DNA of 64,000 bases, taken from Blepharisma stoltei ATCC 30299 (Eukaryota; Protista; Ciliophora). The stretch is taken from assembly GCA_965603825.1 (NCBI GenBank), contig CBFDEM010000018.1, positions 1 through 64,000 of the forward strand, given 5' to 3'. The position numbers and the translations under genes were made by a program. The notes under the pieces were generated by a model. The model saw nothing but the letters and a program-made list of their open reading frames with translations. It was not told the origin of the DNA and searched no databases. Position 1 is the first letter of the stretch; each line of letters starts with the position of its first letter. Shown piece after piece: positions 1 through 18,899 of the stretch.

Positions 1-3000
1 AACCCCTAACACCCTAACACCCTAACACCCTAACACCGCTAACACCCTAACACCCTAACACCTAACACCCTAACACCCTAACACCGCTAACACCCCTAAC
101 ACCCTTAACACCCTACACCCTAACACCCTAACACTCCTAACACCCTAAACACCCTAACACCCTAACACCCTAACACCCTAACACCCTAACACCCTAACAC
201 CCTAACACCCATAACACCCTAACACCCTAACACCCTAACACCCTAACACCCTAACACCCTAACACCCTAACACCCTAACACCCTAACACCCTAACACCCT
301 AACACCCTAACACCCTAACACCCTAACACCCTAACACCCTAACACCCTAACACCCTAACACCCTAACACCCTAACACCCTAACACCCTAACACCCTAACA
401 CCCTAACACCCTAACACCCTAACACCCTAACACCCCTAACACCCTAACACCCTAACACCCTAACACCCTAACACCCTAACACCCTAACACCCTAACACCC
501 TAACACCCTAACACCCTAACACAACCCCTAACACCCTAACACCCTAACACCCTAACACCCTAACACCCTAACACCCTAACACCCTAACACCCTAACACCC
601 TAACACCCTAACACCCTAACACCCTAACACCCTAACACCCTAACACCCTAACACCCTAACACCCTAACACCCTAACACCCTAACACCCCTAACACCCTAA
701 CACCCTAACACCCTAACACCCTCCCCTAACACCCTAACACCCTAACACCCTAACACCCTAACACCCTAACAACCCTAACACCCTAACACCCTAACAACCC
801 TAACACCCTAACACCCTAACACCCTACACCCTAACACCCTAACACCCTAACACCCTAACACCCTAACACCCACCCTAACACCCCTAACACCCTAACACCC
901 CTAACACCCTAACACCCTAACACCCTAACACCCTAACACCCCTAACACCCTAACACCCTAACACCCTAACACCCTAACACCTAACACCCTAACACCCTAA
1001 CACCCTAACACCCTAACACCCTAAACACCCTAACACCCTAACACCCTAACACCCTAACACCCTAACACCCTAACTACCCTAACACCCTAACACCCTAACA
1101 CCCTAACACCCTAACACCCTAACACCCTAACACCCTAACACCCTAACACCCTAACACCCTAACACCCTAACACCCTAACACCCCTAACACCCTAACACCC
1201 CTAACCACCCTAACACCCTAACACCCTAACACCCCTAACACCCTAACACCCTAACACCCTAACACCCTAACACCCTAACACCCTAACACCCTAACACCCT
1301 AACACCCTAACACCCTAACACCCTAACACCCTAACACCCTAACACCCCTAACACCCTAACACCCTAACACCCTAACACACCCTAACACCCTAACACCCTA
1401 ACACCCCTAACACCCTAACACCCTAACACCCTAACACCCTAACACCCTAACACCCTAACACCCCTAACACCCTAACACCCTAACACCCTAACACCCTAAC
1501 ACCCTAACACCCTAACACCCTAACACCCTAACACCCTAACACCCTAACACCCTAACACCCTAACACCCTAACACCCTAACACCCTAACACCCTAACACCC
1601 TAACACCCTAACACCCTAACACCCTAACACCCTAACACCCTAACACCCCTAACACCCTAACACCCTAACACCTAACACCCTAACACCCTAACACCCTAAC
1701 ACCCTAACACCCTAACACCCTAACACCCTAACACCCTAACACCCTAACACCCTAACACCCTAACACCCTAACACCCTAACACCCTAACACCCTAACACCC
1801 TAACACCCTAACACCCTAACACCCTAACACCCTAACACCCTAACACCCCTAACACCCTAACACCCCTAACACCCTAACACCCTAACACCTAACACCCTAA
1901 CACCCTAACACCCTAACACCCTAACACCCTAACACCCTAACACCCTAACACCCTAACACCCTAACACCCTAACACCCTAACACCCTAACACCCTAACACC
2001 CTAACACCCTAACACCCTAACACCCTAACACCCTAACACCCTAACACCCTAACACCCTAACACCCTAACACCCTAACACCCTAACACCCTAACACCCTAA
2101 CACCCTAACACCCTAACACCCTAACACCCTAACACCCTAACACCCTAACACCCTAACACCCTAACACCCTAACACCCTAACACCCTAACACCCTAACACC
2201 CTAACACCCTAACACCCTAACACCCTAACACCCTAACACACCCTAACACCCTAACACCCTAACACCCTAACACCCTAACACCCTAACACCCTAACACCCT
2301 AACACCCTAACACCCTAACACCCTAACACCCTAACACCCTAACACCCTAACACCCTAACACCCCTAACACCCTAACACCCTAACACCCTAACACCCTAAC
2401 ACCCCTAACCACCCTAACACCCTAACACCCTAACACCCTAACAACCCTAACACCCTAACACCCTAACACCCTAACACCCCTAACACCCTAACACCCTAAC
2501 ACCCTAACACCCCTAACACCCTAACACCCTAACACCCTAACACCCTAACACCCTAACACCCTAACACCCTAACACCCTAACACCCTAACACCCTAACACC
2601 CTAACACCCTAACACCCTAACACCCTAACACCCTAACACCCTAACACCCTAACACCCTAACACCCTAACACCCTAACACCCTAACACCCTAACACCCTAA
2701 CACCCTAACACCCTAACACCCCTAACACCCTAACACCCTAACACCCTAACACCCTAACACCCTAACACCCTAACACCCTAACACCCTAACACCCTAACAC
2801 CCTAACACCCTAACACCCTAACACCCTAACACCCTAACACCCTAACACCCTAACACCCTAACACCCTAACACCCTAACACCCTAACACACCCTAACACCC
2901 TAACACCCTAACACCCTAACACCCTAACACCCTAACACCCTAACACCCTAACACCCTAACACCCTAACACCCTAACACCCTAACAACACCCTAACACCCT

Positions 3001-3039
3001 AACACCCTAACACCCTAACACCCTAACACCCTAACACCC
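1..3039 (+). repeat. Telomere, (CCCTAACA)n, chromosome end
   Basis: ~380 tandem CCCTAACA units with scattered small indels, joining unique sequence at ~3040; this unit is known from Blepharisma and Stentor. Confidence 0.98.
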
Positions 3040-4788
3040 AAGCTGAGTAAATGCATTTTATCAATTTTCTTATTTTGCTTCGTTCCCAAATATTAAAACT
3101 TTTTTAGTCGAAACAGGATTACCTAAAACAATGATTTTCTTGCTAGCTGCACCATATATAAATTCTTGGCATTTGTATAGGTTAATTTTTTGATTTTATC
3201 ATGGGTGTTATGAAAAATTGCCATATCCTTTGTGATTTCTAAATTAGGTGAGACAAATTCAACTCTATCCTCCTTTATTTTGGTTAAGATGCCTTCTGGG
3301 TTCAAATATCGTTATGGCGTTAGTTCCAAAACAGCCAATTATATAAGTATTGGTCTTTGGGTCTTGCCTTATCTTGATGATATTTATTCTCCTTTCAAGC
3401 GAACAGGGCCTTATTTGCTTATTTTGAATGATAGATAGATTCATAATGCTTGGATTTCTGCCTATTTTTTACTTTTTGCTATCTCAGCTGTCCAAAATCG
3501 TTCTTTGACATTCGCTATCACATATGGAAAATTCATATCAGTTGTAAAGCACAACTATTTGCCATCTGGGCTGAAAGCACTACAATTCAAGAGCTCACCT
3601 ATAGTGAATTTAAGCTCAGATGTGTTGGATATCATTTGACATGTCTTTCATCTCTAAGACTTCTTGCTGTCCTGCTTGATCTTCATCATCATAAAACTTG
3701 TAGCAAGTAGTGAAGTTGTTAGAGACATTTTATCATAAATTTCTATAAATCAATACCTTCTACCTATAGTAATTATTATCTAATTTTTGACTCTTCTATG
3801 GTTGTTTATTACATGAAGTTCAACAGAAATTTAAAATAAGCAAATTGAATCAGTGGAACTTATGCTCCTCCAAAATTAAATTTAGTCTTTGTAGCTAATC
3901 TAGAAGGTAGCTTTCTGGAGTGGAAATTTTGAGAAGGTTTCTGGCTTGAGATTAATGTTTCTCATATAAGGCCAATACAAATTATCGCTAAGTCTTAGAA
4001 ATATCAAGTCTATAAATTTTTGGAAGTCTTGACTGTATTTTTCTTTAATAGTGATATCTGGAATAAAGAGGTTAGATTAAAAGACTTCATTGAAACTGTC
4101 ATTCAAATTATATTTCCCAATAACAAGGCTACTTTTATCTCAATAGAAATTTCAGTTTTAAAGCATAAGTTGTCTTCAAAATTTTCAATGTTTGAGCCTA
4201 CTCAGTCATTTTTCTCAAATTCCAGTCATTTGTTGTGCTGCAATATATCCAAAAATGCTTTGCTTCTAAAACATTTCCAATTTTTCACAAGCCATTTAGG
4301 CTATGAAAAGACAAATATCAACCTTGATAAAAGAAATTCAAGTTTAGCTAAATTTCTTAGAGAAAACCAACAAATTTAAAAGAAGAACTCTAAAAAAAAC
4401 GCCACACAAGAAAAGGCAAATCAAGCAAGAGGGCCTTAAGAAGCCTCGAAAGCTACATATGTGTGAAGAGAACTATACGGACCAAAATTATTGCGAAGAT
4501 CTTGAAAGGTAGTCAGGAACTTACGAAACTGATATTAATATTACAGCATTGATGAGCATATTTGAAGAGGACAAAATTGTTTCTCGTGTCTAAGATATAT
4601 TAATAAATTCAGCATAGGTAAATCGAATATGGTTATACATCTTTAAAGGCTTTTTTAAATAAGCGTGTATTTTTGGCATAAATTGGCTCACTAATAATCC
4701 CTTTTATGGAAGTTATTGAAAAAGATTAATGATTCTATTTTGTGAATTTTATTCAATTGATCAAAATTTTACGTTATTACATTTAAAC

Positions 4789-5565
4789 ATGAATATAAGC
4801 TGTATCGAAGACCAGCCTCCCTCAATAACCCCTGATTCCTTTCACAATTTTAAAAAACTTAACCCAAAGACAGTCTTCAAATCCCAGCTACACACTTTTT
4901 CAAAACCCCAACGAATAAAAGGATTCCAACTATCAGCTGGCCCTCGAAGCAGCAGCATAAGCCCCATGAATCGCTTTCTCTCTACAGAACAAAGCCACCA
5001 CCCAGCTCTTTCTTCAAGAAAACTCGAAAAAGAGCTCAGAGAAATAAATTGCCAGCTTAATGATGAAAATTTTCCTCCACGAATAAATTCGACATTTGAC
5101 CAGAGTTCTTTGCTTCATAACAAATTCAAAATGATACAGAAGCCCTATCAAAATCCCAAGTACAATGAGGTGGTTTATCTCAATAAATTGTGCAATCATT
5201 TAATTGAGGAACAAAATAAGCTGAAAATTAAGCTAGCACAGCAGGAAGATATTATTGAAGGAATGAAAGGAAAATCAAGCACACATGGCCACCCTTTGAA
5301 ATTGTTCCAAGAAGCTGTAAACCATTTAGAAAAAGAAAGAAAAATAAGGCAGTTAAGTGCGAGAAGATCGGCAACGCCAAGAAAGAGGAGTATTATTATA
5401 AATCATAACTCGGCTTGTAAGGAAAATCCTGTAAACCTGTCGCTCAATTTGAAAGGGATAAAGAAAGATGACGACGAGCTGTTTACGTTTCGACCAAAAT
5501 CTCCAACAACGCCTAATAAAGGAGCATTCCCAAGAGAAGTATTCAGAAGAATAAAAAACAGTTAA
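4789..5565 (+). CDS. Hypothetical protein with coiled-coil and basic low-complexity segments
   Basis: Open 259-codon frame from ATG 4789 in an A-rich context (alternative ATG 4729) to TAA; no family recognised. Confidence 0.7.
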   Translation: MNISCIEDQPPSITPDSFHNFKKLNPKTVFKSQLHTFSKPQRIKGFQLSAGPRSSSISPMNRFLSTEQSHHPALSSRKLEKELREINCQLNDENFPPRINSTFDQSSLLHNKFKMIQKPYQNPKYNEVVYLNKLCNHLIEEQNKLKIKLAQQEDIIEGMKGKSSTHGHPLKLFQEAVNHLEKERKIRQLSARRSATPRKRSIIINHNSACKENPVNLSLNLKGIKKDDDELFTFRPKSPTTPNKGAFPREVFRRIKNS

Positions 5566-5633
5566 ATTTGTATTAATATTTAGGTTTTATATAACTTATT
5601 AGACATAAATTACGAATTTTCAACAATCTATTA

Positions 5634-6161
5634 TTAAACTGTAATTGGTCCTAGATAAGCTTCGCTCATTTCACAAACCCCCATCATTTCATTCCCATTG
5701 ACTCTTACAGACATAATTCTCAGTCTTACATCGCCGCCTGCTTGAATTGTTTTTGAAGGATCTGTCTTATTGACCCATCTAGGGTGAAGTCTAGCTTCTG
5801 GCTCCAAATAGTAATCTGCAGCTATATTTTGTGCTGCCACAAACATGCTCATAGGTCCCAGCGTGGCTGTGAAGCCAACTTCTATGACTTGACTCACCAT
5901 GGCGTCAGCGACTTCACCTTTATAAGGCATAAAGACCAAAGTTTTATATATAAGAGTATGAACAAAACGTCGCCGCTGGAGTCTTTACCTTCCCTTCACG
6001 AATTTTTTCATGTTTGAGCACTTTTACGATGTAGCCGGATTTTGTGTCGAATGGGCCTTCAATTGCACCGTTGAGGAGGATAGCGAGATACTTATTGATT
6101 CTTTTTCCGAGGTATTCTGGGGTTAGTTTAGGTTCTTCTTGAGACTTAGAATGAAAAACAT
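5634..6161 (-). CDS. RPB7: RNA polymerase II subunit RPB7-like, with three small indels (frameshifted copy or consensus error)
   Basis: Reconstructed MFFILSLKKNL(K)LTPEYLG...IEGPFDTKSGYIVKV...REGKV(K)DSSGDVLF..Y-KTLVFMPYKGEVADAMVSQV..VGFTATLGPMSMFV..GGDVRLRI..YLGP; indels near 6128, 5985 and 5948 lie in A or TA runs. Confidence 0.8.
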
Positions 6162-6399
6162 TATAAAATGGCTCGCTAGTTTTTATGAAGATTTGGAATC
6201 TTAAGAGTCCGATTTAATTTTCTTAAGACTTTATCTATTTTAGACTATTTAAATTCAATAGCAGGTCGATTAAATAATTGAGTGCCTTGTTCTTTGCTTT
6301 TATTAAATATGTCCAGTTAGAAAGAGGCTGCGCCTTCTATTTAAACTCTCCGAGATTTATAGTAAATGTAATAGCTAAAGCCTGTTTTAAATTAATCAG

Positions 6400-7517
6400 T
6401 TACTCAAATTATTTGTAGTTATGAAAATATTTTTAAACAAGTTTTAAAAGAAATCGACTCTGATTCTACAAAAATTGGTAGCTATGTTGAAAAATTCTGA
6501 CAAGCACAAAAACTATCGAGAATCGAGAAAGATCCAGTTTTAAATTTGTTAGCCTTGCAGTCAAATGAAGCTGTTGAAAAAGCCAAGGCAATCTTTACAG
6601 TAAAATTAAATAATAATATCGTGTTATTCTGTGAAATAGGAAGGCAAATTGATGCAGTTATCAAGAGATTTCACAGAGAAAAGTCCAAAGGAATTTCGCA
6701 TGAAATTCATTCTGAATTGAAAAACATTCATAATAGCTTTGAAAAGGTAGGGGAGAATTTACAACCAGAATTAAGTAAGTATAAAGAAGCTATCAGAATT
6801 GATCCAAATGATGCTGATGCATACAATGACATAGGAATTATCTTCTATGATGAAAAGAGAATTGAAGAAGCAGTAAAACATTACAACGATGCAGTTAGAA
6901 TCAATCCAAACTGTGCATTTTATTATTCAAATAAAGGAAATGCTCTAGCTGAATTAGGCAGAAGAGAAGAAGCTATGGAATGTTATAAAGAAGCTATCAG
7001 AATTTATCCAAATAATGCTGATGCATGCATTGGCATAGGACTTATCTTCCTTAATGAAAAGAGATATGAAGAAGCAGTAAACTATTACAACGATGCAATT
7101 AGAATCAACCCAAACTGTGCAAAATATTATTCAAATAAAGGAAATGCTCTATATAAGTTAGGGAGAAGAGAAGAAGTTATGGAATGCTATAAATAAGCTA
7201 TCAGAATTGATCCAAATTATGCTGATGCATACAATTGCATAGGAGTTATCTTCTATAATAAAAAGAGATATGAAGAAGCAGTAAAAAATTATAACGACGC
7301 AATTAGAATCGATCCAAATAATGCTGATGCTTACTATAACATAGGAGTTATCTTCTCTAATGAAAAGAGATATGAAGAAGCAGTAAAGCATTACAACAAT
7401 GCAATTCGAATCGGCCCAAACTCTGCAACTTATTATATAAATAAAGGAGATGCTCTTGGAGAGTTAGGCAGAAGAGAAGAAGCTATGGAATGCTATAAAA
7501 AAGCAAATAGTTTATAA
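6400..7517 (+). pseudogene. 5'-truncated copy of the TPR-array gene at 16216-18497, ~7 TPR motifs, internal TAA
   Basis: Near-identical to 16463 onward; GAA>TAA at 7194-7196; lacks the N-terminal Cys/His motif; 3' flank 7518-7753 matches 18498-18723. Confidence 0.85.
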
Positions 7518-8074
7518 ATGCTTAATTTTATCAATAATAAAGTAAATTTTGCAGAGATTTTATTATTAGTATATATCATATAAATTATTAAATATATATG
7601 ACTTACATTAAAGTTATAGACTCATTAGAATAGCCAAAGGGAAATTATATAGGGAACTACTTTAAAACAAAATGCAATTTTTAGAAAGCTACGGAAAATG
7701 AATTAAGAGATTAAGATATATAGGAGCAATTAAAATGCCATGTGTAGATTAAATATTATAATTCTGCTTGAGAAAAAGTTGAACCTAAACTTTGGCTTTG
7801 AATATTAATAAGTATTCCAAACAATTTTTCAAATATTGCACGTTAGTAGCATTTCAGAATTATTTCATCAATCATATTCCAAACTTATTCAGACTATAGC
7901 ATGCCAATTCTTTTAATTCATCGAAAATGGACCGTAATCGATTTACTCAATTTTTGAAGTAGGGATAGTAAGAGTTATTTCCTTCATTTTAAAAATTTTA
8001 ATTGAGAGAATTGGATTTTATAAAAAATTAGCAAATGCGAAGCTTATTCATAAAAATCCATTTCAAATTCCAAT

Positions 8075-9110
8075 ATGATATTTTAATTGTCACTCTTCTC
8101 TTCAATACTTACGGCCTCATCACTTGCAACCCAAATGCCTGCATTCCTAAAGCTGTAATTTTTATATAACAAAGCGATGGAAATTACGACTTAAGCTGCA
8201 TGAAATCATATTTTGGCTTTGATTCTGGATCAAGCTGGATCTTTGGTGATTCCTTTCAAAAATCTGATTATAGATCTTGCAAAAAAGCATGGTCGATATG
8301 CCCTCATTTTTTTGGGCAACGGAGTCTGTGATCAGCATTTCAACATTCCTGAGTGTAGCTATGACCTTGGAGATTGCAGCTACTGTGGCAATGAGTGCAA
8401 ATTGCATTTAGGTCTAGAAAATCAATTAATGGAAGTTACAGTCCAGCATGCAATGTTCCTTCTTGCTATTATGCAAAAACGTATGCTGAAAATGCTCTGT
8501 AGAGTGCAACTCAATAATCTGAGGAAATGGAAATTGCAATAGCGAATGCAACAACGCTCAGTGCAATTATAATAACGGAGACTGCTTAAGTCTCACTTGT
8601 GCTGAAAATTGATTTATTTTAGATGATAGGAGACCAAGCTTGTAACAATGAAAAATGCGAATATGACAAAAACGACTGCGGATGTACACCAGAATGTCCC
8701 AACAGTATATGAGGAGAGGGGGTATGCAAAGAAGAATGCAATAATTTAGTCTGTGAGTTTGATAAATGAGATTTTGGGAAAAGTGCGATTCTGAATGGAA
8801 TACTGCCACTTGCAAGTGAGACTATATTTGTGGATCTCTAAGTTTTTCGCAGTCGACGGCTATGGGAAGTGCAGTCCTGGGTGCTTAGTAGGGTAATGCA
8901 ATTATGATCAAATGATCTCAGATTCTGAAAAGTGGCACAAAAACCAGGAATGATTGGTTTACTCTTTATCAGCAGATAACTAGAAATGATACCGTTCTAA
9001 TATGACTTCTGAGCGGCATCTAGCTATAAGTGCAATCTCATTATGGCTCTAGACAAAATGAATGCCATCCAGAGTGCTTTATACCTGATTTTTTTTTCTT
9101 GGATATTAAC
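8075..9110 (+). pseudogene. Degenerate LNR (Lin-12/Notch repeat) cysteine-rich secreted-protein gene
   Basis: LNR-type motifs in different frames: LGNGVCDQHFNIPECSYDLGDC, GNGNCNSECNNAQCNYNNGDC, DQACNNEKCEYDKNDC; several frameshifts and stops. Confidence 0.75.
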
Positions 9111-9552
9111 TAAGCCTTCTTGCGTTGTAGAAAACTGAATTTAGCTTTTAGCTTGAAATTTTCTTAATTTTTCAGTAGTTTCTGATGCTATTTCTTTTTC
9201 AGAAATCTCTCATTTTCCAATAAATAGTGATTGATAATAAGGTGTTGAAAACTCCAGAAATATTGGACTGAGGCAAAAGCATAATCCAATAAAGTATTCA
9301 TCTTTGGCAAAGCTTATCTTACTTCTGGGATTGCATCGATAATTGATAGAAATTTAGCCATCTGGAACCCTTGCAGAATACATCATCTATTTATTTTAGC
9401 AGGCTTTAATGAATATTAAACGCTCCAGCCTTTTTTAAAAGTTTTGATTTAGATATAAATTTGTAAAGATATAATTTCAAAGCTAAAAAAATGATTTCAA
9501 ATTGTGGTCTTTAATGGAATATAGTAATTTCGATCGATAATCATAATAACCG

Positions 9553-11541
9553 ATGGAACTTTTTCCCGAAGAGTTAACAAACGCTTTTGAATTTAAGGAT
9601 CACCTCAATTTTGGAGGTTATGGAACTATCTATCGAGCCATAAAGAGAAGTAATTTTTATTCAGGCAATGGGCAAATGTATGCAATAAAGGCTGTAGCCA
9701 GAACTAGCACAGGGTCAACCTGGAAGGATATTGGAGCAGAGCTACAAGTACTCTCATGGGCTAATCCATACAAACTTCGTTTAGACTCCTTTTTTGTTAA
9801 AGGGGAAACTTTCTACATGGTCATAGATTATTGCCAAAATGGTGACCTTCTTAAAGCCGTAGTTGATAAGATTTGTGCCCATGAAATATTTGAAGAGGAC
9901 GAAATCTGAAAATATTTTATCCAGATCTGCTTTGGGCTCGAGTCTTTGCACTACAACGGATTTATTCATCGAGATCTTCATCCACAAAATATCCTTTTAG
10001 ACGAAAATAAAGATATTAAAATAGCTGATTTTGGCACTTCTCGCTCTTTACTCACCAAAACAATTCAGGGTGTTGCCAGCTACCAGTCTCCTAGGACTCA
10101 TAGTGGAGATCTCCAGGTTAAAGAAAGTGATGTTTGGGCAGTAGGCTGCATTTTGTATTATCTCTGCAACCTTGAGCATCCTTTTGGCGATAATGTGAAT
10201 AAAATAAAAAATGAGCCTCATAGGCCAATAAGAAGCGAATACTCTAATGAATTGAGGTATTTCGTTGATTGATGCCTAAAGAAGAGGCGAGAAGATAGGC
10301 CAACAATAGTTGATATCTTAACTAATGAGTTTATAGTCAATAAAACTCTAAGCTTAGGTATTACAATTCCACAAACATCTGCTATGAATGCAGCTATTTA
10401 CCAAATCCAACTTGAGAAAGAAAGGGAAAGAAATGAGCAGCTTAAAAAGGAGTTATCTAAATATAGAAAAGAGAGCATAGCCCGGAAAAATGAAATTGGG
10501 TCGCTTAAAGAAGAAATAGGCTACTTAAACAGCATAATAAATGAGAATAAAAAGAGTGAGAAAGATCTCAAAGACAGGATTGAAGACCTGCTTAATTCTC
10601 AAATGATTAAGATTCCTCAAGCCCAAATGATCCAAGAGCTAAGAGAGAAGAGATCTGAAATTTTAAATAGATCAAATGGCCCAGAATTAGAGCAAGACTT
10701 TAGAAGAACCTGCTCAAAGTGCAGTAGCGATATTTATGCTCTTCAGCAAGCTTATCAAGATTATACTAATGCTTATCGCCAAAAAGCATCTCTTTATACA
10801 ATTACAGGAAAAGACAGCAGAACTAATTTGATTATTTATGATACAGAAAATAATATTAAGGAAGTCAGGATTGTAGAGACTCCTCAACCTCTGGATTGGG
10901 GTACTTGCATTACTCAGCTTCCTAACGGTAATTTATTTTGCTTTGGTAATAGCGAACTTTCTGGAGTTTCATTGATAATTGGCGAGAATAATATTTTCAA
11001 AGAGCTGCCATCTGGAACTCCTTGCTGTGCCTCATCAGCTATCTACTTCAATAATAGTGTTTATTGCTTTGGAGGATGAAATAATCAAAATTTAACTCTT
11101 TCAAAGAGATTTGATTTAAATAAAAGCCGATGAATTAAATTAGAGCCACTGCCACAAGCCGATTGCCATTGCAATAGTGTAATATTTAATGGGGATATTG
11201 TGATTTCTGGATATGATAATAAAAATCTTTTGAGGTATTCAATTGGTAGCAACACTTTCGTAGCAACTCCTTATGATTTTCAAGCTCGTAAAGGCAAGAT
11301 TCTTATAAGTACAGAGAAACTGTATTTAATTGAATGTGGTAGTAATGGATCAATCTATGAAAGCGAATTGTCAAATGACACTGCCTGGAGACGAATTGGA
11401 GACTCAGTAATAAGATCTGATTTGGATCAAGTTTATTTGTCATATAATAAAGGAGGAATAAACATTGTATACCTTTATGGTGATCCTACTAGTTACTTCA
11501 AGTTTAATTTAGAGACGAAAAGATTAAATAAGCTAGATTAA
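9553..11541 (+). CDS. Ser/Thr protein kinase (NEK-like) + coiled coil + kelch-like repeats, 662 aa (TGA=Trp)
   Basis: ORFs 9553, 9946, 10384 and 11200 share one frame, joined only by TGA (EIWKYFIQIC, VDWCL, FGGW, SRWIKL); GGYGTIY, AIK, HRDLHPQN, DFG, SDVWAVG; kelch-type VYCFGG..RFD..W..L.PLP. Confidence 0.9.
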
Positions 11542-11680
11542 AATAATTTGATAATAAATAGGTCTCGTTTAATAATCTTTACTGTAACTCTTTCAATATC
11601 TTTTATTGATCAATCTGACTTATGTACTTAGGCACTTATTTAGGTTGAGTGGAAAATGTCAGCTATCTAATAATCATTAT

Positions 11681-13834
11681 ATGATGGCAAAGAAATGTTT
11701 CGAACCTGAGTGCATGAATGAGGTGGGCTATGCATGCAAATACTCTTCTCCTGACACTTTATCTTGTGAAGTGCATGCTTTTGAGCATATAAACTTGCCT
11801 AATAGATCTCATAATCTTCAAGCAATTTTTATGCAGCCTTGTAAAGGGACAAACTTGCTTAACTGTCAAATAAGTACTGTTTCTAAAGACCTCAACAGTA
11901 AACCCAAGGAAACAGAAAGCACTTTAAACGTCATAGACACCTTAAGAAATAAAACAGCTGAGATATTGAGTAGACCAAACAATCCAGAATTAGAGATAGA
12001 TTTCAGAACAACTTGCTCAGCAATTCAGAAGAATCTTAGTCTTTATGATCCACCACTAAAGCAAGCATGCCAATATTATCTTAAAGCTTATCAACACAAG
12101 ACATCTCTTTATAATACTACAAGAGATTATGAAAACAGCAGAACTAATTTGATCATTTATAACACTGAAACTAAAACTCAAGAAGTCAAAGTATTCAAGA
12201 CTCCAGAACTACTAGACTTAAGCACTTGCATAACTCAACTTCCAAATGGCAAGCTATTCTGTTATGGTAAATATAGAGTTTCTGGGATTACAGTGCTAAT
12301 TGATGTAAATGGTGATGTTAAAACACTACCATCTGGAACTCATTGCGCTGATTCATCATGTATCTATTTTAACAACAGCGTCTATTGCTTTGGAGGAAAT
12401 GATGAAAATCGTTGTGCTTTAACTCTATCTAGTAGATTTGATTTAAATGAAAATCGATGAATTCAATTAATTCCAATGCCAAAAGCTGATTATTATTGCA
12501 ACAGTATTATATTTAATGGAAATATTTTGATTTCTGGGTGGAAAAATAGAAATATTTTGTTATACTCAATTGATATTGACTCTTTCTCGATGATTCCTTA
12601 TGAGTTTGAAGAGAAGAAATGAAAGATTCTGATAAATGCAGAGAGTTTGTATTTGATTGAATGCCCTGGATCAATTTATGAAAGCAAAATTGGAATTTAT
12701 TCTAATTGGAGACGAATTAGAAAATCAAAAATCAATTGCAATATTTCTCAAGTGTATTGCTCATATAATAAAGGAGGAGTATACATCTCAACTATTAGTC
12801 TGCAGACTAAACAATATTATTATTTTAATTTAGATCAAAAAATCATTATTGATGTTGCTTACTATAATAAACATGTCGCACTTAGAAGAGTAGATCAAAA
12901 GATTGAAGCGATAAAATGAAATAACCAGAATTTTAAGCTCGATCCTTATTATCTGGATGAATGAAATCTAAAAGGCAATACACTATACAATTTAGGGGAA
13001 AATCTAGAAGTAATCGAAGTGAATGACGAAGCAATCAAACTCATTCCAAAGAGCACTTGCTTTTACTATAATAAAGCCAACGCTTATATGAAGTTAAAAC
13101 GATATCTAGAAGCAATTGAATGCTATGACGAAGTAATTAAACTCGATCCAGACTATGCTATATATTACAGTAATAAAGGCAATGCCTTTAATAATTTAAA
13201 AAGATATCCAGAAGCAATCGAATGCTATGACGAAGCAATCAAACTCAAACCAAAAAACGCTAGCTTTTACAATGATAAAGGCAACACTTTTTATGATTTA
13301 AAAAGATATCTAGAAGCGATCGAATGATATAACAAAGCAATCGAACTCAATCCAAACTATACTATATGTTACAATAATAAAGGCAATGCTTTTAATAATT
13401 TAAAAAAATACCTAGAAGCAATCGAATGCTATGAAGAAGCAATCAAACTTGATCCAACTAATGCTGATTTTCACTATAACAAAGGAAATGCTTTAAATGA
13501 ATTAGGTAGATATCCAGAAGCATTAGAAAGCTATGATGAAGCAATCAAAATCAATCCATATAAGGCCAAGTATTTAAATGGTAAAGGTAATACTCTTTAT
13601 GCTTTAGAGAGATATCAAGAAGCAATGCAATGTTATGATGAGGCAATCAAACTTAAACCCAATAATCCTTTGCATTTCTGCAACCGAGCAAGAGTGCTTA
13701 ATACTCTCAGAACAGAAGAAGCAGCTTTGCAGGATTTTAATAGGGCTTATAATTTGAAGGAAGAAAAATCAAATAAGTGGTGTTTTCTTTGGGGATGAAT
13801 GAAGCCTTTCTGAAAAAGATTTCAAAATTATTAA
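11681..13834 (+). CDS. Cys/His (B-box-like) N-terminus + kelch-like repeats + ~8 TPR motifs (TGA=Trp)
   Basis: One frame through ORFs 11606, 12647 and 13019 via TGA to TAA 13832-13834; CFEPEC motif, VYCFGG, and EAIECYDEAIKL.P...YNNKGN repeats; the true C-terminus may be frameshifted (alternative end 13995). Confidence 0.85.
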
Positions 13835-14098
13835 CGACGTATTTGGCCGAGACTGTATTGAACTACTCCAAAAATAACAGATTTAGAATAAATTTGGTTA
13901 TAATAAACCGTCATTATAATAATTATATATCCAGCGAACCTCCATTTGCTCTGGCCATAGAAAATACGGAAATATGCAAAAGTGCGATTGATTAAAAATT
14001 GTCCTTTTATATTTCCATTAATAGATCTCATTTAATGCTCTTGTGTTATTAACTATATAGCAGATTTAAATAAAATTAGCTAGCATTATAGTAAATAT

Positions 14099-15864
14099 AT
14101 GGAGCTTATGCAATGTTTCGAGCCAGGTTGCAACCATGAGGTTGAATACTCGTGTCCATGCACCTCTCCTGATACTCTATCTTGTGAATTTCATTTCGGG
14201 AAGCATTTGAAGCTCCCTAACAGAACTCATGCTTTCAGCTCGATTTTTGTAGAGCCATGCCAAGCTACCAAAGAAGAAATTCTTAAGTTTCTTATAAAGG
14301 CAAACTCAAAAAATAGCAAGCTAAGAGGGAAGATCCTAGCATCCTTTAGCCAGCGCATTTTTGAATCCAAAAATGATATTGAAGAACTCTTAAAAAATTT
14401 GGATTCTGGCTCAGCTCAAATAACCAATTATTTTACAAAAATTTCTCAAGCTCAAAAATTATTCAAATTAGAGCAAGACCCAATTTTAGGACTATTGAGT
14501 TTACAACCTGATGAAGCTATTAAGAAATTAAAAACAATTATCCCAATTAATCAAGAATGGTCCAAAACAGCAAAGATATTTTGTGATCTCAGCGGAAAAA
14601 TTGATAAAATGATTGAGTGCTTTATTGGAGATAAATTTGAAGCTTATTTAGATAAAAGACTGTCTAATATAGAAAACACTCTTCAAGAACACAATAAAGT
14701 TATTAAATCAGTCAATGAAGAGCATAAAAAAATAATTGACTGAACGAACGCTCAGATAGCGAACATTAAAGACTCTATTTCTAAACTAATAAATGAGAAT
14801 AGAAAAAGCGAGAGGGATCTCAAAGACTGGAAAGAAGAAATGATCCCTAAAACAACAAATGAAATAGACCTGCTTGATTTTCAAATAATTAAGACGACCC
14901 AAGACCTTAGCAAAAATAATGAATCAGAAAAGGTCCAAGAGATCCTTAAGAGCTAAGGGAGAAGAGATCCGAAATTTTAAATAGACCAAATGACCCAGAG
15001 TTAGAACAAGACTTTAGAAAAACCTGCTCAAAATACAGAAGCAATGCCTGTGTTGATGATCCTACTCTTCAGCAAGCTTATGGAGATTATATTAATGCTT
15101 ATCGCAAAAAAACATCACTTTATACTATTACAAGAAATGGCATCAGAACTAATTTAACTATTTATGATACAGAAAATGATAGTAAGGAAACCAGGATAGT
15201 AGAGACTCCTGAACCACTGGACAATTGCACTTGCATTGCTCAGCTTCCTAATGGTAGTTTATTTTGCTTTGGTAGAGACAATCCAGGTTCTGGAGTTTCA
15301 TTGATAATTGATGAGAATTATAGAGTTCAGCAGCTGCCATCTGGAACTCCTTGCTGAAACTCATCAGCTATCTATTTCAATAGCAGTGTTTATTGCTTTG
15401 GAGGATATAAACAACGTTATTTAAATCTATCAGAAAGATTTGACTTAAATGAAAACAGATGAATTAAATTAAAGCCGCTGCCAAAACCTGATTTCAAATG
15501 CAATAGTGTAATATTTAACGGGAATATTGTGATTTCTGGAAATATTAGTCAACATCTTGTGAGGTATTCAATTAGTAGCAACACTTTCACAACAATTCCT
15601 TATAAATTTAGAGATGCTAGACACAAGATTCTTATAAGTGCAGAAAGACTGTATTTAATTGAATCTGATGGAGCATTCTGTGAAAGTGAATTGTCAAATG
15701 ACACTGCCTGGAGGCGAATTGGAAACTCAGCAATAAGATCTGATTTGGATCAAGTTTATTTGTCATATAATAAAGGAGGAATAAACATTGCAATCTATCG
15801 TTCTAATCCCATTAGTTACTTCAAGTTTAATTTAGAAACAAAAAACATAACTAAACTAGATTAA
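14099..15864 (+). CDS. Cys/His (B-box-like) + helical region + kelch-like repeats; 2-nt insertion at ~14946 causes a frameshift
   Basis: CFEPGC..CPC..CEFH..H..H start; the C-terminal half is paralogous to 10540-11541; ATCC[TT]AAGAGCTA versus paralog ATCCAAGAGCTA gives TAA at 14954-14956. Confidence 0.8.
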
Positions 15865-15939
15865 AATAATTTGCTAATATATAGGCTTTATTTAATAATC
15901 TTTTGCTATTAACTCTTTAGCTCTGTAAAATTACCGCAT

Positions 15940-16030
15940 AGGTCAATTTATTTATATTTGTTGGACGGAGAGCATTACTTCAAGTTTGATTTGGCTTCAA
16001 AGAGATTGAATAAATCAGAAGAATTATAAA
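15940..16030 (+). pseudogene. Remnant 3' end of another kelch-like paralog
   Basis: CATTACTTCAAGTTTGATTTGG (HYFKFDL) resembles the SYFKFNLETK ends of the 11541 and 15864 genes. Confidence 0.5.
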
Positions 16031-16215
16031 ATGATTAGTTAGAAGAATTTTTAATGGTTTTTATATATAAATGTAAGGATTGCTAATGCTTTATCATAAA
16101 TTACACTTCTTTAGATGTTCCTAAAATGTTTTTAATTTCACCTAAGTATTAGAATTCTAAATTATTTTTTAGATATTTATATGCAATGCATATTAGGAAT
16201 ATAAATTGTAATAAT

Positions 16216-18497
16216 ATGAGCACTATAGGATGCTTTGAGCCAGAGTGCGACAGTGAAGTTGAACTTTTATGCAATTGCACTTCACCTGTGATTTATTCTT
16301 GCTTAAAACACATAGTGAAGCATTGCGAATCTAGCGAAGGACCTCATAATTTTAGCTCGATTTTTGTAAAGCCCGTTGAAGGCACAAAAGAAGCAATCCT
16401 TGGCTTTCTTATGGAAGAAAAGTCGAAAATTGAAGAAATGAAGGCAAATATAATAGCATCCTTTACTCAAACTCTTTGTAGTTATAAAAATAGTTTTAAG
16501 CAAGTTCTAAAAGAAATCGACTCTGATTCTACAAAAATTGGTAGCTATGTTGAAAAAATCTTTCAAGTACAAAAGCTATCGAGAATGGAGAAAGATCCAG
16601 CTTTAAATTTGTTAGCCTTGCAGTCAAATGAAGCTGTTGAAAAAGCCAAAGCAATGCTTACAGAAATATCAAATAATAATATCGTGCTATTTTGTGAAAT
16701 ATGAGGGCAAATTGATGAAGTTATCAAGAGCTTTCACAGAGAAAAGTCCAAAGGAATTCCATATGAAGCGCATTCTGAATTGAAAAACATTCATAATGGC
16801 TTTGAAAAGGAAGGGGAGAATTTACAGCCAGAATTAAGTAAGTATAAAGAAGCTATCAGAATTGATCTAAATAATCCTGACTCATACAATGGCATAGGAG
16901 ATATCTTCTATAATGAAGGGAGATATGAAGAAGCAGTAAAACATTACAACGATGCAATTAGAATCAACCCAAACTGTTCAATTTATTATAGAAATAAAGG
17001 AAATGCTCTTAGAGAGTTAGGGAGAAGAGAAGAAGCTATGGAATGCTATAAAGAAGCTATCAGAATTGATCCAAATAATGCTGATGCATACAATGGCATA
17101 CGATGTATCTTCTATAATGAAGGGAGATATGAAGAAGCAGTAAACTATTACAGCGATGCAATTAGAATCAATCCAAATTCTGCAATTTTATACAATAATA
17201 AAGGAGATGCTCTATATGAGTTAGGGAGAAGAGAAGAAGCTATGGAATGCTATAAAGAAGCTATCAGAATTGATCCAAATAATCATTATGCATACAATGG
17301 CATAGGAAATATCTTCTATAATGAAAAGAGATATGAAGAAGAGTAAAACATTACAACGATGCAATTAGAATCAACCCAAACGATGCAATTTATTATACAA
17401 ATAAAGGAGAAGCTCTTAGAGATAGAGGCAGAAGAGAAGAAGCTATGAAATGCTATAAAGAAGCTATTAGAATTGATCCAAATAATCATTATGCATACAA
17501 TTGCATAGGAAAAATCTTCTATAATGAAAAGAGATATAAAGAAGCAGTAAAACATTACAACGATGCAATTAGAATCAATCCAAGTGAAGCATGCTATTTT
17601 TTATGGAAAGGAGATGCTCTTAGAGAGTTAGGGAGAAGAGAAGAAGCTATGGAATGCTATAAAGAAGCTATCAGAATTGATCCAAATAATGCTGATGCAT
17701 ACATTGGCATAGGAATTATCTTCCTTAATGAAAAGAGATATGAAGAAGCAGTGAAACATTACAACGATGCAATTAGAATCAACCCAAACTGTGCATTTTA
17801 TTATTCAAATAAAGGAAATGCTCTATATAAGTTAAGTAGAAGAGAAGAAGCTATGGAATGCTATAAAGAAGCTATCAGAATTGATCCAAATTATGCTGAT
17901 GCATACAATGGCATAGGAAAAATCTTCTATAAAGAAGAGAGATATGAAGAAGCAGTAAACTGTTACAGCGATGCAATTATATTCAACCCAAACGATGCAA
18001 TTTATTATAATAATAAAGGAGATGCTCTATATGAGTTAGAGAGAAGAGAAGAAGTTATGGAATGCTATAAAGAAGCTATCAGAATTCATCCAAATAATGC
18101 TGATGCATACATTCGCATAGGACTTATCTTCCTTAATGAAAAGAGATATGAAGAAGCAGTAAAACATTACAACGATGCAATTAGAATCAACCCAAACTGT
18201 TGAATTTATTATAGAAATAAAAGAAATGCACTTAGAGAGTTAGGGAGAAGAGAAGAAGCTATGGAATGCTATAAAGAAGCTATTAGAATTGATCCAAATA
18301 ATCATTATGCATACAATTGCATAGGAAACATCTTCTATAATGAAAAGAGATATAAAGAAGCAGTAAAACATTACAACGATGCAATTAGAATCAATCCAAA
18401 CTCTGCAAACTATTACTTTAATAAAGGAAATGCTCTATATGAGTTAGGCAGAATAGAAGAAACAGTGAAATGCTTGAACAAAGCGAGGAGTTTATAA
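16216..18497 (+). CDS. Cys/His (B-box-like) + helical region + ~16 TPR motifs; 1-nt deletion at ~17342
   Basis: MSTIGCFEPEC..CNC..CLKH..H..H; TGA read-through at 16702 and 18201; GAAGAAG-AGTAAAA versus repeat consensus GAAGAAGCAGTAAAA shifts the frame. Confidence 0.85.
16840..18480 (+). repeat. Tandem 204-bp (2 x 34-aa TPR) repeat array, ~8 units
   Basis: Recurring GAATGCTATAAAGAAGCTATCAGAATTGATCCAAAT ... AAACATTACAACGATGCAATTAGAATCAACCCAAAC units at high nucleotide identity. Confidence 0.95.
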
Positions 18498-18899
18498 ATG
18501 CTTAATCTTATCAATAATAAAGTATATTGTAGAGATTTTCTTATTAGTATATATCATATAAATTATTAAATATATAGGATTTACATTAAAGTTACAGATT
18601 CATTAGAAAAGCCAAAGGGACATTATATAGGGAACTAAACAAAATGCAATTTTTAGAAAGCTACGGAAAATGAATTAAGAGATTAAGATATATAGGAGCA
18701 GTCAAATTGCCATGCGCAGATTAAAGCCTATATATTAATTAAAATTTCATAATAAGTATATACAATTAAACTTTTAAAATGACTGATAATTAATTTCGAA
18801 ATAAAAGGATGGCAGCTTTAAATTTTTCATCACTTAATCCTCATTTGACAAAATAAATTATTTCGGGTTTGTTTTGTGGCACCTACAATTAAAAGCATA

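Follow-up and report, generated by a model that had tools for sequence, protein, structure and literature searches.

The TRIM (RBCC) proteins offer a close described counterpart to a group of genes found behind the telomere in a 64,000-nt stretch of the ciliate Blepharisma stoltei ATCC 30299 (contig CBFDEM010000018.1, positions 1 to 64,000; hereafter the window). The Blepharisma proteins are predicted to resemble TRIM proteins, for example TRIM-NHL and TRIM5alpha, in placing a putative cross-brace-like N-terminal zinc module and a putative antiparallel coiled coil in front of a variable C-terminal binding domain. As in TRIM-NHL proteins, this domain includes a six-bladed propeller, and a lineage-specific expansion goes together with signs of positive selection in the binding-domain loops. 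Unlike TRIM proteins, the Blepharisma family lacks a RING, has a head spacing of its own and shows no detectable sequence kinship with zf-B_box; its propeller is Kelch rather than NHL or SPRY, a TPR tail is added, and some members carry a kinase head. The KLHL/Keap1 BTB-Kelch and plant F-box-Kelch proteins share the six-bladed Kelch fold with variable B-C and D-A loops, whereas here BTB, BACK and F-box are absent, the propeller follows a three-helix bundle, a new Cys/His head or a NEK-like kinase serves as N-terminal partner, and the Kelch sequence of the window pieces falls below the Pfam cut-offs. Variable N-terminal domains joined to repeat sensors (TPR, WD40, Kelch), in large, fast-evolving and clustered families, are also found in the fungal, animal and bacterial NLR/STAND proteins; the present family differs in having no NACHT/NB-ARC, and its assembly module would be a coiled coil instead of an ATP-driven oligomeriser. 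Subtelomeric contingency gene families are enriched at chromosome ends and are marked by segmental duplication between ends, gene conversion and many pseudogenes. The Blepharisma family resembles them in its end enrichment, a 95% identical distal block, gene conversion and pseudogenes, but its proteins are putatively of cytosolic type and its genes lie at somatic (macronuclear) contig ends.

We regard the window, with a probability of roughly 0.7, as a single subtelomeric portion of a superfamily of RING-less TRIM-like proteins that is very large and nearly confined to Blepharisma. The core protein consists of a Cys/His head, a long helical region likely to form an antiparallel coiled-coil dimer, a three-helix bundle, a Kelch propeller and, usually, a TPR solenoid; in a sister architecture, an atypical NEK-like kinase stands before the same coiled coil and propeller. 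The family turns over by birth and death, through tandem and segmental duplication among contig ends, gene conversion, deletions, truncations and frameshifts, and its architectures are a few stable, separately expanding subfamilies, not freely recombining modules. The analysis defines an undescribed N-terminal Cys/His domain and corrects the attractive idea of local module shuffling behind this cluster.

Open reading frames and module hidden Markov models (HMMs) bore out the layout given by a first-pass annotation made from the sequence alone: five same-strand paralogs and one remnant, all on the + strand, with TGA read as tryptophan. Genetic code 4 was accordingly used for local translations, and TGA-free pieces or public protein ids served as search queries. 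Two of the genes, B and C, are intact; the other three are broken. Gene A (6396–7514, +) is a 5'-truncated pseudogene of the head-helical-TPR (E-type) subfamily, with its helical part at 6396–6779 and TPRs at about 6780–7505. Gene B (9553–11541, +) encodes a NEK-like kinase (9553–10422), a coiled coil (10423–10668), and a three-helix bundle with Kelch propeller (10627–11538). Gene C (11681–13834, +), of 717 aa, joins a Cys/His head (11681–11851) through a short linker to a propeller (11930–12856) and TPRs (12857–13780). Gene D (14099–15864, +) is frameshifted and comprises a head (14099–14269), a helical region (14270–14704), a coiled coil (14684–14953) and a propeller (14950–15861); its reading frames run from 14099 to 14953 and then from 14950 to 15861, with the frame change at about 14935–14953. 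Behind it lies the remnant (approximately 15964–16029, +), about 21 codons and a stop, which when translated in frame 1 looks like the last, C-terminal strand of a propeller. Gene E (16216–18497, +), with a head (16216–16386), a helical region (16387–16842) and a long TPR array (16825–18485), is likewise frameshifted: in the assembly sequence its frames are 16216–17343 and then 17337–18494, with a 1-nt change at about 17337–17343.

Modules of the core protein

The head alignment revealed five invariant residues (C6, C11, C19, C29 and H32) and three near-invariant ones (C21, H36 and H44), in the spacing C-x4-C-x7-C-x-C-x7-C-x2-H-x3-H-x7-H. The head is probably an N-terminal, B-box-like Cys/His domain with eight metal ligands for two zinc ions. 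The best weak Foldseek match of the head-helical model was the PML B1-box (probability 0.89, E 0.6), and B-box/ZZ folds as a group were matched weakly at E 0.4–4, including the B-boxes of TRIM39 and of KAP1 and TRIM5alpha, the latter two in structures that combine B-box and coiled coil. Neighbours of the head in ESM feature space included zf-B_box clusters (0.79–0.83). These are weak, mutually consistent hints of a predicted B-box/ZZ-type cross-brace finger followed by a coiled coil. Matches of the head to HNH nucleases (E 0.1–0.75) were dismissed as a 23-residue chance match.

Behind the head, the model places helices at residues 58–121 and 152–213. Homodimer prediction for the head-helical fragment gave a score of 0.33 against 0.00 for the best control, with a partner predicted local distance difference test score (pLDDT) of at least 65. 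Contacts were antiparallel (e.g., 61 with 133, 112 with 62) and agreed between runs to 64%. Among 30 solved homodimers, 21 attained the mark applied to such scores, whereas none of 23 proteins solved as single chains did so. The prediction supports, but does not show, pairing of the head-helical fragment as a dimer.

The annotation's name "kelch" held by fold and not by sequence, as Pfam searches of TGA-free window pieces stayed below threshold (E 0.005–0.013). An AlphaFold2 (AF2) model of the propeller, built from a 35-sequence alignment, had a pLDDT of 91.9, a predicted template-modelling score (pTM) of 0.89 and 23 strands, with a three-helix bundle followed by the propeller. Foldseek returned at least 500 matches at E <= 0.001, headed by designed Kelch proteins, KLHL3, KLHL20, K13 and Keap1 (probability 1.0, TM 0.65–0.77). 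Propeller paralogs bear precomputed PF01344 or PF24681, and the blades show hhhhGG, Y and W motifs. The predicted fold is a six-bladed Kelch beta-propeller of four-stranded blades. The tandem 34-residue TPRs are unambiguous: in genes A, C and E, the TPR_1 and TPR_11 E-values lie between 1e-24 and 1e-74 (7e-33 for a TPR match in gene A).

The kinase of gene B matched Pkinase at E 8e-25, and its closest solved relatives are NEK7 and NEK1 (E 3e-17). The AIK lysine and the DFG motif are both present. The catalytic loop reads HRDLHPQN (His for Lys) in gene B and a relative on contig C39, and HRDLHLQN in one on C38; SPR stands in place of the usual APE or SPE. The domain could be either a NEK-like kinase of atypical kind or a pseudokinase; its low ratio of nonsynonymous to synonymous divergence (dN/dS, or omega; 0.16) argues for function. 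RING, BTB, BACK, F-box and U-box were not found by Pfam in any TGA-free piece of genes A–E. NACHT and NB-ARC were absent from the window gene pieces by Pfam and from the canonical 884-aa protein described below by the module HMM map, in agreement with the earlier view that these are not canonical NLRs.

Family size, selection and possible role

The assembled genome comprises 41.46 Mb in 64 contigs, and window-derived profiles for the head and for the first half of the propeller matched it at no fewer than 151 and 152 places, respectively. First-look candidates numbered 275 and 413; the best 150 of each were scored, and all matched. Less than 20 kb from a contig start lay 28/150 of the propeller matches listed (P 2e-14) and 20/150 of the head matches (P 5e-8), against an expected 3.1%. 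Across 21 contigs of known length, which were not blindly chosen, 30 of 85 propeller matches fell within 20 kb of either end, where 5.8% would be expected. The subtelomeric enrichment that had been proposed as a check was thus observed. The superfamily may account for about 1% of the B. stoltei gene set.

Beyond this genome, a profile of the head, helical region and coiled coil matched 171 clusters among 1.84 billion representatives (E <= 0.001). In almost every one of the 150 clusters listed, the match starts at the N-terminus or close to it. Among 30 clusters sampled, 19 were from B. stoltei and 11 came from metagenome, Logan, JGI or MMETSP sources, none bearing another organism's name; a word-index search returned B. 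stoltei proteins only. As far as these sequence collections indicate, the superfamily hardly extends beyond Blepharisma. Among its more distant members, the head is also found in front of WD40 propellers (4/50 scanned) and a kinase, and other head-bearing members are named MORN, ubiquitin-like or RING-type by UniRef. A search of the literature found no description of a ciliate B-box/Kelch/TPR family or of a kinase-Kelch fusion. Neither version of the B. stoltei genome paper mentions Kelch or TPR, and the published version is also silent on B-box and gene families. Among the ENA metagenome scaffolds, three loci (L021–L023, GROS21 samples) carry single-gene head-Kelch (408 aa) and head-WD40 (864 aa) homologs with complete gene calls.

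Selection was estimated as omega from parsimony substitution counts on a tree of 28 full-length propellers, using ungapped columns classed by the secondary structure of the model. In the full set, omega was 2.29 in the B-C loops (bootstrap 1.47–3.60, P 2e-5), 1.11 in the D-A loops and 0.52–0.58 in the bottom loops, strands and N-terminal helices. The B-C excess replicated in each of the two clades of the propeller tree described in the next section when these were analysed on their own, with omega at 2.07 (P 1e-4) for clade II and 2.06 (P 0.02) for clade I. Strands, bottom loops and helices remained at 0.5–0.8 across all analyses and at 0.5–0.6 in the full set and clade II. Pairwise dN/dS was 0.16 for the kinase, 0.1–0.6 for the head, 0.4–1.0 (mostly 0.5–0.8) for the propeller and 0.5–1.3 for the TPRs. 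The top face with which the propellers of Keap1 and KLHL proteins bind their substrates is made up of B-C and D-A loops. The B-C loops of the present propeller, likely ligand-binding, appear to be under positive or diversifying selection: an omega of about 2 is not what relaxed constraint or misalignment would produce, since both push toward 1, and the bottom loops provide an internal control. The earlier description of a rapidly diversifying family stands as regards fast turnover and a B-C loop dN/dS above 1, but not as regards diversity by module shuffling.

Genes D and E appear to be transcribed, because exact-match contigs of guessed RNA runs lie on both (on gene E at 16521–16605, 16662–16748, 17115–17241 and 17359–17466) and coverage is limited to gene bodies. 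In these runs (X9 and X11), gene bodies were covered and intergenic bins were close to zero, whereas DNA-type runs covered both.

Several points weigh against the TRIM-like reading. The head sequence gave no usable match in Pfam or the PDB, with no zf-B_box even at E 10 in 22 members. The head-helical model found no Foldseek match at E <= 0.001, all structural matches lying above E 0.3; the model is of low confidence (pLDDT 65), and the homodimer score barely attains its mark. The end enrichment, about sixfold, is possibly inflated, as only the best-scoring candidates were counted and assemblies tend to break at repeats. The dN/dS counts are crude, being parsimony counts on paralogs with gene conversion, and the B-C and D-A loops are presumed to form the top face on the strength of the Kelch literature, not from this model. 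The RNA status of X9 and X11 is a guess, and contigs from near-identical paralogs could be placed on the window.

With the TRIM-like reading in hand, the head and coiled coil would form a dimeric or oligomeric scaffold, the propeller top face (B-C loops) and the TPRs would bind varied protein ligands, and kinase-headed forms would provide signalling output for the same binding module. A bolder extension, which we put forward tentatively and hold to be rather unlikely, is a TRIM-analogous but independently built intracellular recognition system: hundreds of end-enriched genes would encode zinc-head/coiled-coil scaffolds with Kelch, TPR and WD40 sensors, an arms race would drive their top-face loops, the opponents being bacteria inside the cell, viruses, toxins of prey or selfish elements, and the kinase forms would be signalling outputs. 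Little is known about how free-living ciliates recognize intracellular threats or partners, and in this early-branching ciliate the genes offer a definite candidate, open to test, for a family that serves adaptive recognition. If the extension were true, it would mean convergence on a TRIM-like design and an innate-immunity-like ciliate family built without NTPase or RING.

The family could instead consist of scaffold or adaptor proteins (for the complex cortex, cilia or cell cycle of the ciliate) that have expanded in this lineage in the ordinary way, under relaxed constraint and with no arms race, a view that we also find hard to favor. Ciliates do enlarge kinase families, the Stentor kinome preprint reporting 89 NEKs and novel kinase architectures with no mention of a Kelch or TPR fusion. 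The gene-wide omega of 0.5–0.8 and the abundant pseudogenes fit relaxed constraint, and the metagenomic homologs are single genes among housekeeping neighbors: two members, from freshwater-labelled samples, lie on gene-dense eukaryotic scaffolds among PP2C, a CDPK-like kinase and similar genes. However, relaxation would bring omega to about 1 and not about 2, only the B-C loops show the excess, with bottom loops of the same alignments staying at 0.5, and concentration at contig ends together with near restriction to one genus is unusual for housekeeping scaffolds.

A role as ubiquitin-ligase substrate receptors, like those of the TRIM, BTB-Kelch or F-box-Kelch type, seems distinctly improbable. 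Receptors of this sort typically have Kelch propellers and B-box/coiled-coil scaffolds, the nearest matches by fold are KLHL3, KLHL20, KLHL12 and Keap1, and two head-bearing members are labelled "RING-type domain-containing" in UniRef. Against this, the window genes carry none of the five ligase-associated domains sought by Pfam, and one of the two "RING-type" members, P0085, had zero Pfam families in the scan.

Inherited architectures and decaying copies

The first-pass annotation had interpreted the cluster as genes built from interchangeable modules, a possible module-shuffling system. Module HMMs built from the window were mapped on 29 fetched loci, with architectures counted in the first 20, which are rich in the family. 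The commonest arrangement contains all non-kinase modules, head-helical-(coiled coil)-propeller-TPR, and accounts for 12 of 75 units, many units being lone fragments; contig C5 holds two intact 884-aa genes of this canonical form (with coiled coil) in tandem. The window genes are subsets of it. For every one of them, a DNA search showed that other contigs carry relatives which are full length, share its architecture and are 78–87% identical. Gene B, for instance, has full-length copies on C10, C5, C53 and C39 at 85–87%, and relatives of gene E are read in one long open frame each, of 1196 and 708 aa on C42 and of 772 aa on C12.

The propeller tree separated two starred clades. Clade I holds genes B and D, a copy on C24 and two kinase-headed copies, whereas clade II holds gene C, the canonical genes, and clades of propeller-only and propeller-TPR genes that lack a head. 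The same partners were recovered by the head(+helical) tree, which placed D with the C24 and C38 copies (95, starred) and C within the canonical group (99, starred); the nearest rows to E were the head-helical-TPR genes of C42 and C12, on one side of a branch with support 74. Architecture labels required 11 changes on the propeller tree and nine on the head tree, against a minimum of eight; shuffled means were 16.9 and 15.2, and none of 200 shuffles was as low. As judged from these phylogenies, the head(+helical) and propeller trees are congruent at the subfamily level and the architectures are clade-specific. The five window genes represent four pre-existing subfamilies found at many other contig ends, and the differences among them are, on alignment, deletions, truncations and frameshifts of a fuller architecture.

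Gene C illustrates such a loss. Its product is identical to the public 717-aa B. stoltei protein P0012, and compared with the 884-aa C5 proteins its head and linker resume exactly after a gap of about 185 residues; its closest DNA relative among the matches listed (C17:76474–79273) keeps the helical part. Because the linker joins where the C5 proteins resume and the C17 relative retains the helical region, gene C reads as a canonical gene that has lost its helical module by an in-frame internal deletion. Short-read contigs of three runs link 12775/12777, at the end of the gene C propeller, to 15976 in the remnant.

Active and repeated recombination of modules, locally or between subtelomeres, for combinatorial head-and-sensor diversity in an immune-like strategy appears quite doubtful in this light. 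Five architectures do stand side by side, kinase- and head-type propellers are intermixed within one well-supported clade, and across the superfamily the head is joined to many other C-terminal domains. There is also one real head swap, in clade I, where a kinase or a Cys/His-helical head precedes the same coiled coil and propeller: the propellers of B and D differ by a synonymous divergence (dS) of only 0.22, compared with 1.45 for their coiled coils, and their DNA homology begins at 10623/14935, at the D junction. The swap could be accounted for by gene conversion or by an earlier fusion. However, the two module trees agree at the subfamily level, every architecture of the window is met again at full length on other contigs, the odd forms of C and A are a deletion and a truncation, and the head-helical-coiled coil-propeller form was broken in all seven copies seen. 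Tree congruence and the full-length relatives of like architecture elsewhere leave the shuffling model unsupported for this cluster and indicate inherited architectures, the very outcome that the annotation had named as refuting it.

Tandem groups also occur elsewhere in the genome. Internal arrays at C44:652000–662000 (L019) and C46:156000–166000 (L020) consist of a divergent, shorter head-propeller subfamily (about 400–440 aa), with members about 2 kb apart and a TGA (Trp) codon within the head motif. Tandem clades of propeller-TPR and propeller-only genes without a modelled head lie at C19:46000–56000 (L017) and C61:88000–98000 (L018).

Decay is widespread, as the proposed birth-and-death turnover had implied. 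Across the sampled loci, 65 propeller units comprised 26 that are full length in one frame, 11 that are full length and frame-broken, 23 partial or divergent and five cut by the locus edge. All seven D-type copies examined were broken, one C10 copy having its junction in frame. Gene D (14935–14953) and the C24 copy (L008, about 4925–4945) have a -1 frame change of equal length within one and the same block of 30 nt, and open frames of 285 and 304 codons survive in them on either side. That both propellers stayed open has a probability of about 6e-4 if the frameshift is ancestral and the propeller neutral. We favor maintenance of these open frames by repeated gene conversion from intact neighbors; a bypass of the frame change by some recoding is not favored over it. 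On the C38 copy of the D type (L010), a coiled-coil segment of about 108 nt is present in three tandem copies at 9464–9809.

The D frameshift is real, since contigs of three short-read runs (X1, X3 and X9) cross the junction without an indel (14701–15188, 14772–15062 and 14771–15080), which rules out an assembly error there. A tiny intron was also rejected: the only frame-restoring GT...AG is a non-canonical 20-nt stretch, the C24 copy has the same shift without GT, and the X9 contig, guessed to be RNA, crosses unspliced. Programmed frameshifting is unlikely, as no slippery site was seen and the shift would be needed within two codons.

That the locus is a non-functional graveyard of pseudogenes, or a contig end rich in repeats that was wrongly assembled, is highly improbable. 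In favor of this view, three of the five genes are broken and a remnant is present, the genome paper reports trimming unreliable "cruft" from contig ends, and small indels at 13889 and 14046 set the reads apart from the assembly. Against it, genes B and C and the two 884-aa C5 genes are intact, core omega is well below 1, independent short-read contigs reproduce the D region exactly, and the RNA-guess runs cover gene bodies and not intergenic bins. Those two indels (+A and -1 nt), found in short-read contigs of two runs, are intergenic, between C and D.

The contig end and gene A

The window opens with telomeric repeats, (CCCTAACA)n, at 1–3036 (no strand assigned). Many units are imperfect, and 358 are exact, the last beginning at 3029. 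According to the B. stoltei genome paper, contig ends were given representative telomeric repeats taken from one read, which explains the noisy repeats at the window start. A distal subtelomeric block without family modules follows (3039–6227, no strand assigned), at 95% identity to C6:3439–6685, a counterpart that likewise sits directly behind the telomere.

Gene A lies next to this block. Its DNA is 89% identical to gene E (16463–17386), and the two genes have a 3' flank in common (7272–7753 and 18252–18725). In the assembly sequence, gene A carries an in-frame TAA at 7194–7196, where other repeats have GAA. The end of the distal block lies about 170 bp from the gene A truncation point, and the closeness of this point to the end of a duplicated block suggests that the head of gene A was lost through rearrangement between contig ends. 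The distal block itself holds an open reading frame of about 280–300 aa (4663–5562) without family modules.

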